From assembly GCA_021613535.1 (NCBI GenBank), contig CP075494.1:8184001-8248000 (forward strand): a DNA stretch of 64,000 nucleotides. Reading direction: 5' to 3'. This DNA comes from Adineta vaga. Taxonomy: Eukaryota > Animalia > Rotifera. This document shows, one piece after another, positions 28,630-35,266 of this stretch (the first letter of the stretch is position 1; every line of letters begins with the position of its first letter). The notes under the pieces were generated by a model. It worked only from the letters and a program-made list of their open reading frames with translations. It was not told the DNA's origin and did no database searches. The translations under genes were made by a program, and so were the position numbers.

Positions 28630-30433
28630 ATGTCCGAATCAAGTTGTAAATTTCAAATAGTTTAATTGAAAATAATCAAAATATTTATTTGTTGTTTTCA
28701 TCAGGTTTTAGTTATGGTGACAATGGAGCTTTTTCGCCACCAATGGACGTTACAAATCAGATGCAAAATAGCATACAGCATATAAGTGGCAATTCCAATT
28801 ATTCTAGTGGATCTGGTGGAGATTCACCAACTTCATTAAGTCCGGGTAAGTCCATTGAATGATCAAACGATTTCAAATATGAATTTATACGTTTCTTTCC
28901 TACTAGTACCAATGTCATCCGGTGGTTCATTCAGTGGAATTGGTGGCAATTCCAATTCATCAACAGGCTCAACGCCAACAGCATCAACGAGTGGAGCAGC
29001 TGCTGCATCTCGTTATGCTTGTGTAATTTGTGGAGACAAAGCATCGGGAAAACACTATGGAGTTCATAGGTACATAGATTAGCAAGGTTGATGAATGAAA
29101 AATTTTGGTTTCTCGTTTAGTTGCGAAGGTTGTAAAGGATTTTTCAAACGTACTGTACGCAAAGATTTAACTTATACGTGTCGAGATAATCGAGATTGTA
29201 TTATTGATAAACGACAACGTAACCGATGTCAGTATTGTCGATATCAAAAATGTCTTGCTGTTGGTATGAAACGAGAAGGTAAATTCGAAGCATTTGTTTT
29301 GTTTATTCAATGAAAAACAATTTATATTCGTTTGTATTGTAGCCGTTCAAGATGAACGACAAAAATCAGGCATTGGCGGTGAAGGTGAATCGCCCTCATC
29401 ACCAACTGCTAGTACTGGTAGTGATCATATTAATATTGGCATTGGTTCATCAAGTTCCGGTAGTGATGATGAAATGTTAATTGAAAAATTGATGGCTGCA
29501 GAATTATTTGTTGAACCAAAACTCAACTCATTTCATGAAGAAGATTGTTCTTATGATCGACTTTTATCGACAACTAATGCTCAAATTAGTCAATTAACTG
29601 AATGGGCTAAACGTGTACCTCATTTTGCTACTCTCTCAATTGATGATCAAGTTGCACTTGTTCGAGCGTCATGGAGAGATATTTTATGTTGTTCATTGGC
29701 TTATCGATCAATTATGGCACCAGATTGTGGTTTAATTTTATCTGTTAGTATTACTTTTGATAAACAAAATATCTTAGATTACATTACGATAGAGTAAAAA
29801 CATATCATCATGTTTTAATTCTATGCCGTCAGGCGCATCCATAGAATCTCATTGAGTACTTTCTCTTTAGAAGAAATATTTTCTTTTGTGTCAATCCCAT
29901 TTAGTAGTCTTCAGTATTCTTTATTCTAATTCTAATTATAATCCATCAAAAGGTTCACTATTGTTCTATGGAATCTTTTTTTCTTCATTTAGGATGGTTC
30001 ATATGTTCGTCCACATACAGCTGTTGATCAATCTCTTCAATTTTTCATCACTCGTCTTTATCATGATGTCGTCACAATTTTACGTGAATTAAATGTTGAC
30101 AAAGTTGAAATTACATGTCTTAAGGCTATATTTCTTTTCGATCCTGGTAAATGAACATAATTTGTCACTTTCATTGACAGTTGAATTTTTTATTTAGATG
30201 CGAAAGATGTTGTTGATACATCTCGTATATCTGAATTACGTGAGAAAGTTTGTATGTCATTGGCATCGTACTGCAAAAAGGTTCACAGTGATGATGTTGC
30301 TCGATTTGCTAAATTACTTCTTCGTATGCCGCCAATTCGTGGTTGGTGTATCAAAGGTATCGAAAATTTATTTTTCAATGGTACAGGACGATCACCTGAT
30401 ACGGATATTACAAATATGATTCGAAATCGTTAA
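28630..30433 (+). CDS. RXR: Retinoid X receptor / ultraspiracle (NR2B) nuclear receptor (multi-exon)
   Basis: [73 protein letters not shown]; [42 protein letters not shown]. Confidence 0.93.
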
Positions 30434-31562: not shown

Positions 31563-34500
31563 ATGGATAAACAATCATCCGAGTAAGAACAGTTTTCTTT
31601 CGAAATTTCTTTCTCTAGTTCTATCAAATTCTAGAATCGATTGGTCTCAATTATCTCAACCATTACCATCGAATTTATTTGAGAAATATATTCATCAATC
31701 TATTCTTCCTCCGTTAAGTAGTTTAAATATCAATGAATTAACATGGAATGAATGTCGAACATTTGCATTGAAACTTGCTCAGAATGGTTTTAGTGATCCA
31801 TTATCAATCTTATATACTTCATTTAAACGTTTTTATCCTTCTTGTTCATCGATACGTTCATTTTCTCGTTGGCTAAGATTATATGAAAAAGATTCTGATG
31901 ATTTTAAGAATTATTTTAAAGAATATTCCATTCATTCATCAAATATTCAAACTATTGATGAATTAATTGGTTCGATAAAAAATCTTCGAGTCAAAAATGA
32001 TAATTGTCAATCGTATGATCAATTCAATCAAATATGGATTTTATTTTCAATATCAATTCGTATATCAATTCAAGATAATGCTATTGTAGTACATACATTA
32101 ACATTAGATGATACTGCTACTCGTTCATCACATAAACAGAAAAAAATGACACTATCACGTATGCATTGTATATTTGCATTGACACCAAGTGGAAAATTTT
32201 CGAATCAATTAATTGTATGTAAACAAGGACGAGGTTTAAAAATGAATTTTACATCATCTGCATTTACACGAATTATCAAAACAGCAACAGGAGATATTAG
32301 TCATGAATATATGCAACAATGGTTCGAAGATTTTGTTTCATTATCCTATGCAAAGGATAGCAGGTATACATATACACTTGAAAATTTATAAGCAAGAAAT
32401 AGATTACGGTACGGAATGAAGTAGAGAGAAAGAGTGGAAGATTCGAACGTGCTTTGATATCAGTTGGCAGAGATTAAACCATTTAGCCTATGGTATAGAA
32501 AGCGAATCAATAGTTTTTTTTAATTCTCAGTTCTACTTGAATTTCATTTCTGGATATGATGTTTCAGTGTCAACTAGGTCGCATGTTGAATAAATTAATC
32601 GATAAACAACTTGGATTTGTAAGTCTTATAGAATACGTCTTTTCTATTGTTTTAGCGCCATTCTTTTCGATCCGCGAACAACTCTACTTACGCCTGACAT
32701 CGATAATTTTTGTCAAAAATCCAATATTGAATTGATAACGACTGATTTGAATTATTACTTGGTTCATATACTTTCACCAGTTATTTCTTTATTCGATCAA
32801 CGATGTTCCGATACAAATCGTTTAGAAAAAATGTATTCAAAATCAGCTAGTGATTTAACACGAATTATTTACATAATCTGGTGTTCTTTACGAACATTAA
32901 AGCAAAATGAACAAATCCATCAGATCTTCAAAGATACTGCTTTATGGAGAAACGACGATGAATCATATTTGCAAGCATTAAGAGCAGCATCACCATTACC
33001 AGTATTGAAGAAAAAAAAGAAAAAATCACTTGTGAAAACAGGTATGTAACAACGATTTGTCCTCATGAGATATGAATAACCTTGTTATTTGTTCTTATTC
33101 ATCGATAAATGACAACCTTTTGAGTGAAAACATATTTTTTCGAACTTGTCGTACAATTATGAATGACAAAAGCAAAGCACATTTATAAATAGTAATCTAG
33201 CAAGATTTTCTCGCATCTTAGTTGAATCTATACTTAAAATTCGTAGAAAAACATAAAGATAATGAATTTCTATTTTAGAAAATAAAAGAAAATTATCATC
33301 ATCAATGATAATGATTGATCCACCGAATGAATCAACGCCCGAACAAATTTTATCCTATGTTATTCAACGACAATTATCGATTTCACGTGCAAGTAAATTT
33401 TTAGGTGGAATCAAATTAGATTATTTAAAATATTGTCTTTCATATAAATCGAATTCTTCCATAATGACTGGTTCACGTCTTGTTCAATTGAATACATTTA
33501 TGCAATCTCAATCCACGGTCGATTGGTTACGTCATTTACGTTCGTTATATTTTTGGCCATGTGCAAAACAATTATTCTTACGAGAAATTTATCAATTAAC
33601 TGGTGTTATTGCACGAAAACGTTCGATGAATATGTGCGGAAATGGAAGTATGGGTTCGATTCGAAGTTGTGATCTACAATCACCAGGCATTTTTTGGCGA
33701 GCATTTGAGAATATTCATCAAATACAATTTGATAATGAATCAATTATTGATGATGATCAATGGCATGATGATTTTCAACAATATCTTCGTGATAAAAAAC
33801 TCAATGAAGACAATGTAAGTTATCAATTCATTGTAAAGTTTACTTTCTTGTTTCGAACAAAGATATTTGCTAATTTTAGAGTCAATTATGGACAATGGAT
33901 ACATTTGAATTTCCTCTAACAAAAAAATCAACTGTACTTCAATTACCTGAATGGAATGAATTAAGACCAATGAATTTAACTCCAAAAGTAACTGTACTCT
34001 ATGCATTTTCTAATACAGGTCAAACAACTGAACCATTTTTTATATTTCCGACTTCACTGCGCGATACTACAATCAGTGATGAAAATGATTCTTATAATGA
34101 ATTAGGTCATTTGACATCTCAGATATTTCTTACTTGGATTGAAAATCATTTTAATCAAAAACTTCAAGTTCTTTCTTCTCCATCTTCTTCAACTATTCTT
34201 ATTTTCTGTTCACGTTTACCTATTTTATCACCATTAGTCATATCTTCACTTGAAAAACATCGAATTTATCCTTATGGTTATCCATATACTCGAACGTTAC
34301 CATTTCGATATTTATTTGAACGACGTGTTCGAAATAATCGTTCAACTAATTTAATTAGTGAATTATGGAAAAAGAAATTATTAGAACAACAACGTACACA
34401 TGTCTTAAAAGGTTCAAATTGTTCAGTTCAAAATATCAAATATTACTTTGAACAAGTTTGGTTACAAATCATTCATGAAAAACGTGATGATGATGATGAA

Positions 34501-35266
34501 AATGACACATTTGAATCGAAATGTCAACAAGCATTCGAACAAGCCAAGATTCAAATAAAAATTCTTCGAAAACGAAATACAATTAAAATCATATCGAAAA
34601 AAACGTCAAAACGAACAATCAATTCGTCCTCAAATATCAATCAGGATCGAATGGTTAACGAACTCAATAAACTAATCACAGATACCAATCGTACTAAGAA
34701 ACGTTATACATCGAATACTTTAGCACAAATTTTAAAAATGAATAATTATATTCAACAAAACACAGATTGTAAATAGTTCGAAATTATTCGTAGAAAAATT
34801 TCTTCTAAACCTATTTTCTTATTCTTTAGCTCAATTACCATCGACTTCCAATGGAACGAATGATAATATGGAAAATGTTCATCCTCCGTCGACATCGAGT
34901 GAATCTGATTCATCATTTAATTCGATTTCATCTTCATCAAGTGATAAACGTACACTTGATGAAAATGATCAATCGAATCTACCAAAACGTATGCGTACAT
35001 CATCAAGTAATACAACAGCAAGTCACAAATGGATTCCATCGAAACAATCGATTACAAATATTGAATCTCAATCTACATCATTATTTCAATTTATTCTTTC
35101 ACTTATTTGTAAAATTTTACCTTCAGTCAATTATCAATTTACGGATGAACATTCACTTTGGATTCATTCAACATTGAATTTATATGGTTATAATGGTGAT
35201 TACGAAAAAATCAATTTTCTTATCGATATCGCATGTAAAATCGCAAAAATCAATTCTGTCAGATAA
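31563..35266 (+). CDS. Domesticated pogo/Tigger-like transposase-derived gene with two tandem HTH + DDE_1-like modules (6 exons)
   Basis: Module 1: RMHCIFALTPSG..LIVCK..TATGDISHEYMQQWFEDF..AILFDP..NIELI..HILSPV. Module 2: psq-like YVIQRQLSISRASKFLG, QLWTMDT, KVTVLYAFSNTG..EPFFIFP..NELGHLTSQIFLTWIENHF..ILIFCS. GT-AG introns; no TIRs seen. Confidence 0.72.
32425..32493 (-). mobile_element. tRNA-derived SINE-like remnant in an intron
   Basis: Minus strand reads TAGGCTAAATGGTTTAA (A-box-like) ... CGTTCGAATCTTCC (B-box-like); no full cloverleaf. Confidence 0.4.

Follow-up and report, generated by a model that had tools for sequence, protein, structure and literature searches.

A conserved bdelloid rotifer gene carrying two pogo transposase-like modules in one chain

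The 64,000-nucleotide stretch of the Adineta vaga genome analysed here (the window; C5:8184001-8248000, G+C content about 30%) contains, at C5:8215563-8219266, a gene that reads on the forward strand as a single spliced frame of six exons, with canonical GT-AG introns and every join in frame. An initial annotation, made from the sequence alone, had proposed at this place a spliced host gene built from two successive, catalytically incomplete pogo-like transposases; the spliced frame and its introns agree with our gene model, and the motifs LKKKKKKS, ILFDP and WTMDT quoted in that proposal are all found where it had put them. Our searches covered the 100.8-Mb genome in six contigs (G000); exons were searched singly, and questions about the whole chain were addressed through ortholog proteins from databases (P0103, P0097 and others). 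The results make it highly probable that the gene encodes a host protein of about 1000 residues derived from a pogo/Tigger (DDE_1) transposase, with two homologous modules per chain and incomplete catalytic triads; an architectural role is proposed for it.

Gene model and modular organization

The features of the gene are collected in Table 1. The join of exons 1 and 2 reads MDKQSSEIDWSQ, in agreement with the N-termini of the orthologs P0100 and P0103, and the predicted start, MDKQSSE followed by IDWSQ, is the same as the annotated N-termini of the orthologs from A. steineri and A. ricciae. AILFDP opens exon 3 and WTMDT opens exon 5. In each module, a predicted helical N-terminal region is followed by a predicted RNase H-like domain; the basic linker separates the two modules, and the acidic stretch and the C-terminal helical domain follow the second one. 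PKKKKKK is kept at the linker in bdelloid orthologs, where it may serve in nuclear import, and the PKRMR motif of exon 6 also resembles a nuclear-import signal. Exon 6 has no match in Pfam.

Table 1. Features of the two-module gene and its upstream neighbour (positions in the window)
Feature	Position	Strand	Remarks
Exon 1, start codon	31563-31582	+	MDKQSS + 2 nt; donor GTAAGA at 31583
Exon 2	31635-32363	+	N-terminal helical region (to ~31960), then first half of the predicted RNase H-like domain of module 1
Module 1 beta1, QIWILFSISIR	32029-32061	+	within exon 2; first catalytic Asp lost
Exon 3	32656-33041	+	second half of module 1, with beta4 (AILFD), beta5 and C-terminal helices; basic linker
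Asp of AILFDP	32669-32671	+	sole catalytic-position Asp left in module 1 (second site)
Basic linker LKKKKKKS	33005-33028	+	between the modules; like a nuclear-import signal
Exon 4	33279-33814	+	helices of module 2, predicted as two three-helix bundles (helix-turn-helix-like)
Exon 5	33880-34768	+	predicted RNase H-like domain of module 2 (to ~34560), then acidic stretch and Lys-rich tail
Asp of WTMDT	33898-33900	+	first site, beta1 of module 2
Cys of LIFCSRL	34207-34209	+	replaces the second catalytic Asp of module 2
Basic motif LPFRYLFERRVRNNRSTNLISELWKKKLL	34296-34382	+	module 2; almost invariant across bdelloids
Arg in place of the third catalytic Asp (pogo QPLD)	34305-34307	+	module 2; inside the basic motif
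Acidic stretch	34477-34506	+	within exon 5
Exon 6	34830-35266	+	Ser-rich region, PKRMR motif, conserved C-terminal helical domain, stop codon
Nuclear receptor gene (upstream neighbour)	29095-29794		zf-C4 7.7e-24, Hormone_recep 1.3e-8

Relationship of the modules to pogo transposases

As judged from profile comparisons, the two modules are homologous both to each other and to pogo transposases. In hhalign, module 1 is aligned with module 2 over 156 columns with E 3.5e-10 (score 70.8, about 14% identity), module 2 with pogo with E 1.1e-7 (score 57.8), and module 1 with pogo with E 3.6e-5 (score 40.8), the A. vaga pogo alignment being very thin (Neff 1.3). As controls, the reversed alignment of module 2 and 20 column-shuffled copies of it gave E values of 0.03-0.77. 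Among 2135 open reading frames (ORFs) searched, the hidden Markov model of module 2 matches three genuine A. vaga pogo ORFs (1e-7, 1.5e-6 and 3e-4), and nothing unrelated was found below 0.1. The gathering score of DDE_1 (PF03184) is not reached by the exons of the window; among the members of the family only the distant relatives P0065 (39.9 bits, E 4.3e-10) and P0072 (22.0 bits at a cut-off of 22) reach it, both on module 1, and a weak match covers module 2 of P0061. DDE_1 is nevertheless the sole Pfam family that recurs, being found in 5 of the 15 members, and in a feature search of the ESM-Atlas exon 5 adjoins DDE_1 clusters.

Structure prediction is consistent with this ancestry. AlphaFold2 models were built from family alignments for P0103, the closest annotated ortholog, with a mean pLDDT of 81 for module 2 and 77 for module 1, and each module is predicted to fold as an RNase H-like catalytic domain of the Tc1/mariner/pogo type. 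In Foldseek, module 2 matches Mos1 first (3.5e-4), followed by the RNase H-like domains of PRP8, Metnase (SETMAR), Sleeping Beauty and retroviral integrases, and its VIA-align scores are Z 12.2 for Metnase and Z 11.5 for Mos1. Module 1 is weak in Foldseek, with the best E of 1.4e-2 again to Mos1; among 48,161 chains compared by VIA-align, residues 116-344 of its model match Mos1 and Metnase (Z 10.7) and Sleeping Beauty (Z 9.7). Mos1 and SETMAR are thus the best solved-structure matches of both modules (Z 10.7-12.2, 164-177 residues aligned), although they are only 7-14% identical to the rotifer modules and belong to the mariner branch rather than to pogo. All 10 rows listed in the ESM-Atlas shape search with module 1 are DDE_1 clusters, and two of them, HTH_psq/DDE_1 clusters, are aligned over residues 1-348 and 9-348. 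The likeness to DDE_1 seen by the initial annotation in both units is real but so remote that Pfam misses it in the exons of the window; profiles, distant homologs and predicted structure brought it out. The candidate explanation that the gene has no transposase ancestry was rejected.

In the same models each catalytic fold is preceded by three-helix bundles (helices 12-20, 26-32, 41-46 and 56-67, 69-80, 84-99 in the model of module 2). No match to CENP-B_N, HTH_psq or HTH_Tnp_Tc5 was obtained with Pfam in the exons of the window, an ESM feature search with exon 4 was uninformative, and profile searches against PDB sequences with the exon 4 and module 2 alignments gave nothing relevant. The helix-turn-helix (HTH) domain formerly ascribed to each unit is borne out only in part: the models have bundles of helices at the expected position, and none of the Pfam, hhalign, PDB profile and feature searches produced a significant HTH match.

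To assign the catalytic positions, the motifs were located on the strands of the models and in the pogo alignments. At the first site, on beta1, where pogo has NxDE, module 1 has QIWILFSIS, in which the Asp is lost (Phe/Ser), and module 2 has WTMDT with the Asp kept; this residue is Asp or Glu throughout the family. At the second site, after beta4, the pogo motif LLFDGH corresponds to AILFD in module 1, whose Asp is aligned by hhalign with that of pogo, and to LIFCSRL in module 2, where a Cys, almost invariant in 34 sequences, is aligned with the same Asp. The Asp of module 1 is present in all aligned bdelloids; in the non-bdelloid relatives its place is taken by Cys, Thr, Asn or Leu. At the third site, pogo QPLD, module 1 has HILSP followed by a gap opposite the LD of pogo, and module 2 has LPFRY with Arg, replaced by Asn (QPFN) in the distant branch. 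This Arg belongs to a basic motif, LPFRYLFERRVRNNRSTNLxSELWKKKLL, which varies hardly at all among some 25 bdelloid sequences and has the counterpart PFN..LFQK..RKRQ.DLF..SWRK in the non-bdelloid relatives. Both modules lack a conserved third acidic residue, and neither contains the complete Asp-Asp-Asp triad. The suggestion that module 1 retains only the middle Asp and module 2 only the first is thus exact, both by strand placement and by the pogo alignments. With its triads incomplete, the protein most likely no longer cuts DNA.

These comparisons also bear on the origin of the doubling. Tandem duplication within one gene appears mildly favoured, since the profile score between the modules is above that of either module against pogo (70.8 against 40.8 and 57.8), a weak comparison in view of the thin pogo alignment. 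Fusion of two adjacent pogo-derived genes or elements is the less likely origin, yet one to be taken seriously: it would agree with the low identity of the modules, with the loss of different catalytic residues in each of them, and with N-terminal helical regions that have no detectable similarity to each other.

A second alternative concerns activity. Each module retains one Asp at a catalytic position, and the two occupy complementary sites, the first and the second; together with the almost invariant Cys of module 2, this raises the idea of a protein that is still a nuclease or recombinase, either through a composite site formed by the beta1 Asp of module 2 and the beta4 Asp of module 1, or with participation of the conserved Cys and Arg. 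We consider this very unlikely. The triad of RNase H-fold enzymes lies inside one domain, the non-bdelloid branch does not retain the Asp of module 1, and a conserved third acidic residue is absent from both modules. A protein that has lost cleavage thus remains the preferred reading.

Conservation of the gene as a single chain

In the window a 237-nt intron separates the two halves of the gene, as would be expected if they were separate genes or transcripts wrongly joined in the gene model. This is contradicted by the relatives to such an extent that we find it hardly credible. In two other bdelloid lineages exons 3 and 4, and with them the module junction, are covered by one open frame (L019:8839-10011 and L021:6961-7962), and the same holds for exons 4 and 5 in Didymodactylos (L029:10741-12102). 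Annotated full-length orthologs of 952-1030 amino acids, which include all exons, were found by a second database search in A. steineri, A. ricciae and several Rotaria species, a cluster look-up added a 1385-residue protein from Didymodactylos carnosus, and all splice phases fit. Finally, in P0061, P0065, P0072 and P0080, intronless ORFs from metagenomes that align with the bdelloid proteins over both modules, the two modules occupy one uninterrupted frame of 835-1105 residues. The continuous frames across the junction led us to reject two separate genes and to read the window gene as a single chain, as the initial annotation had done. The introns themselves vary: the L019 and L021 lineages either lack intron 3, which lies between the modules, or have it open in frame, and intron 4 is absent in Didymodactylos.

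A whole-genome search with exons 2 and 5 returned just the window gene, on C5, and one paralog on C2, whose exons are all collinear with those of the window gene and 51-75% identical to them; its protein is P0097, annotated as 'hypothetical protein I4U23_009242 [Adineta vaga]'. The PHD-finger gene and another gene downstream of the C5 copy have collinear paralogs beside the C2 copy, in agreement with the ancient genome duplication of bdelloids. With exon 5 as query, a word search retrieved 46 relatives, most of them from unnamed metagenome contigs and the few with a named source all bdelloid. The orthologs form two groups corresponding to the C5 and C2 copies, and every one in the databases is labelled uncharacterized.

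Upstream of the gene lies a nuclear receptor (Table 1), the DNA-binding region of which we take to be RXR/USP-like, and downstream of it PGI (8e-50). The order nuclear receptor, gene, PGI, EIF3I, PHD is retained in metagenomic bdelloid contigs, and its downstream part in Rotaria and Didymodactylos. Against six relatives, the overall ratio of non-synonymous to synonymous change (dN/dS, by the Nei-Gojobori method, NG86) is about 0.2-0.4, a rough estimate given partly saturated dS and AT-biased codons; dN is lowest in exon 4, the most conserved exon, which is 75% identical between the paralogs and 82-89% identical to the bdelloid orthologs of the same clade (P0098-P0105). A fixed syntenic locus across species, intact frames and an excess of synonymous over non-synonymous change, by which domesticated pogo-derived genes are recognised, are all observed here.

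The A. vaga genome contains pogo elements, and a live, recently active or decaying element might be suspected among them; this can be dismissed almost completely, given two collinear copies only, five introns, synteny across bdelloids, frames intact at 25-60% protein divergence, the incomplete triads and the absence of terminal inverted repeats, for which a search of the gene flanks gave only short AT-rich chance pairs. An active transposon was accordingly rejected on copy number, lack of these repeats, introns, synteny and triads. With two collinear copies, conserved synteny, introns, no terminal inverted repeats and dN/dS of roughly 0.2-0.4, the gene is a conserved host gene and not a transposon, and it has been kept since at least the last common ancestor of bdelloids. 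The copy number, the nuclear receptor-gene-PGI order in related genomes, the dN/dS estimate and the failure to find terminal repeats all bear out the old domestication suggested initially, with synteny extending across Adineta, Rotaria and Didymodactylos.

The two paralogous regions have since diverged in gene content. In the 10 kb around the C2 paralog (L007, C2:11168000-11177999), the interval from this copy to the PHD-finger gene gave no match to PGI, and in metagenomic relatives of the C2 copy (L021) trypsin and BAF genes lie between the nuclear receptor and the gene; the nuclear receptor itself is retained at the same position in both regions. The duplicated regions have therefore lost and gained different genes. 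Pfam recognises no domain in the full-length orthologs, except for PGI (PF00342) in two Rotaria gene models that extend into it, P0002 (513 residues; L018, Rotaria sp. Silwood1) and P0095 (1171 residues; Silwood2); this fusion is probably an annotation read-through.

The distant, intronless relatives point to a greater age. The contigs of P0061 and P0065 come from samples taken to be lake metagenomes. On the contig of P0061 (L027) the neighbouring genes are split by introns, and its myosin is metazoan, with a Rotaria fragment as the nearest named match (82% identity over 56% of the query), which is suggestive of a rotifer host, though not proof of it. The best A. vaga matches of P0065 are exactly the C5 and C2 copies, and the genome contains no closer paralog of the distant branch. 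The domestication probably predates the split of bdelloids from these non-bdelloid relatives.

Other pogo-related loci were encountered in the genome. At C1:161500-166000 (L032), C3:1619000-1623500 (L033), C5:1631000-1635500 (L034) and C5:112500-117000 (L035) intact frames of 219-343 residues have weak matches to DDE_1 and HTH_Tnp_Tc5 and share a Cys/His-rich C-terminal tail ending in ...LCF.HFF..YHFH; they could be a further family derived from pogo, or else a clade of pogo whose tail resembles a zinc finger. At C3:20115246-20249157, five near-identical HTH_Tnp_Tc5 matches within about 135 kb, each broken by one TGA, look like a local cluster of decayed pogo copies.

Proposed function and comparison with known systems

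Several observations weigh against a domesticated two-module pogo protein with an architectural role. Pfam searches of the individual exons of the window gene gave chance-level hits only, with no HTH domain and, even at E <= 10, no DDE_1; scans of the genome for PF03184 and PF03221 find many pogo remnants and not this locus. The helical regions, compared by hhalign with each other and with two pogo N-terminal ORFs, gave insignificant E values of 0.4-0.55. The structural models were made for the A. ricciae ortholog (72-86% identical per exon) and not for the joined protein of the window, the dN/dS values are approximate, and a protein without the canonical triad might still, strictly speaking, perform some other chemistry.

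Host genes derived from pogo/Tigger transposases include CENP-B, JRK, JRKL, TIGD1-7, POGK and POGZ, as well as Abp1, Cbh1 and Cbh2 of S. pombe. To our knowledge, every described protein of this kind has a single transposase module, and a literature search found no description of the present gene or of any tandem pogo-derived host protein. What is new is therefore the presence of two modules in one chain, domesticated pogo transposases themselves being already known. In proteins of the CENP-B class an N-terminal helical DNA-binding part is combined with a DDE_1-derived RNase H-like domain, and CENP-B has in addition acidic stretches and a C-terminal dimerisation domain (PMC4231638). The rotifer gene shares with this class its pogo ancestry and likewise no longer shows transposition features; its protein also contains an acidic stretch and, at the C-terminus, a conserved helical domain. 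In contrast to it, the rotifer chain comprises two transposase modules, in the distant intronless relatives as well, and, where the active site of module 2 used to be, carries an invariant basic motif peculiar to this family. Searched against 1.84 billion protein representatives, the exon 5 profile retrieved only 45 proteins at E <= 1e-3, the named ones all bdelloid, and by this measure of sequence the domestication is independent.

Similarly, the rotifer modules resemble pogo/Tigger transposases (DDE_1, PF03184) in predicted fold, in the order of secondary-structure elements and in the positions of the motifs, with WTxD in place of NxDE, LxFD or LxFC in place of LLFDGH, and LPFR or QPFN in place of QPLD. 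They differ from these transposases in that the gene lacks the DDD triad, terminal inverted repeats and mobility, has introns and fixed synteny, and has exons below Pfam detection. SETMAR, also domesticated, combines a single transposase module with a fused SET domain.

By analogy with CENP-B and Tigger-derived proteins (PMC4231638), the product may be a nuclear DNA-binding or architectural factor. DNA would be read by its helical regions, and chiefly by that of exon 4, since no other exon is conserved as strongly; the RNase H-like folds, both catalytically dead, would have become scaffolds. Where module 2 once had its active site, the Arg/Lys-rich motif may provide a surface for binding nucleic acid or a partner, and the C-terminal helical domain encoded by exon 6 may serve in protein-protein contact, dimerisation or self-association.

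DNA transposases of the pogo/mariner group act as dimers; Mos1 is a dimer of two chains, whereas the rotifer protein would have two catalytic-type folds covalently linked. The two diverged modules, dead in complementary ways, suggest a dimer hard-wired into one polypeptide and then specialised. More speculatively, and in our opinion with a rather small chance of being right, the modules might fold back on each other as a linked mimic of the transposase dimer, so that two DNA-binding heads hold two DNA sites without cutting. Complex prediction on the two catalytic-type domains gave no answer (score 0.01) and hence no evidence either way on their packing. A folded-back chain of this kind would be a single-chain 'synapsis' protein, which might act in chromatin looping, chromosome pairing, repair, or the capture of pogo ends for repression.

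Whatever the arrangement of the modules, the conserved Cys and the Arg/Lys motif show what a transposase active site can become after domestication. If the intronless relatives from lake metagenomes belong to non-bdelloid rotifers, the two-module protein would be an ancient, rotifer-wide invention. In any case, the gene adds a conserved, previously unannotated family to the bdelloids, in which the control of transposable elements and the maintenance of the genome are central questions.

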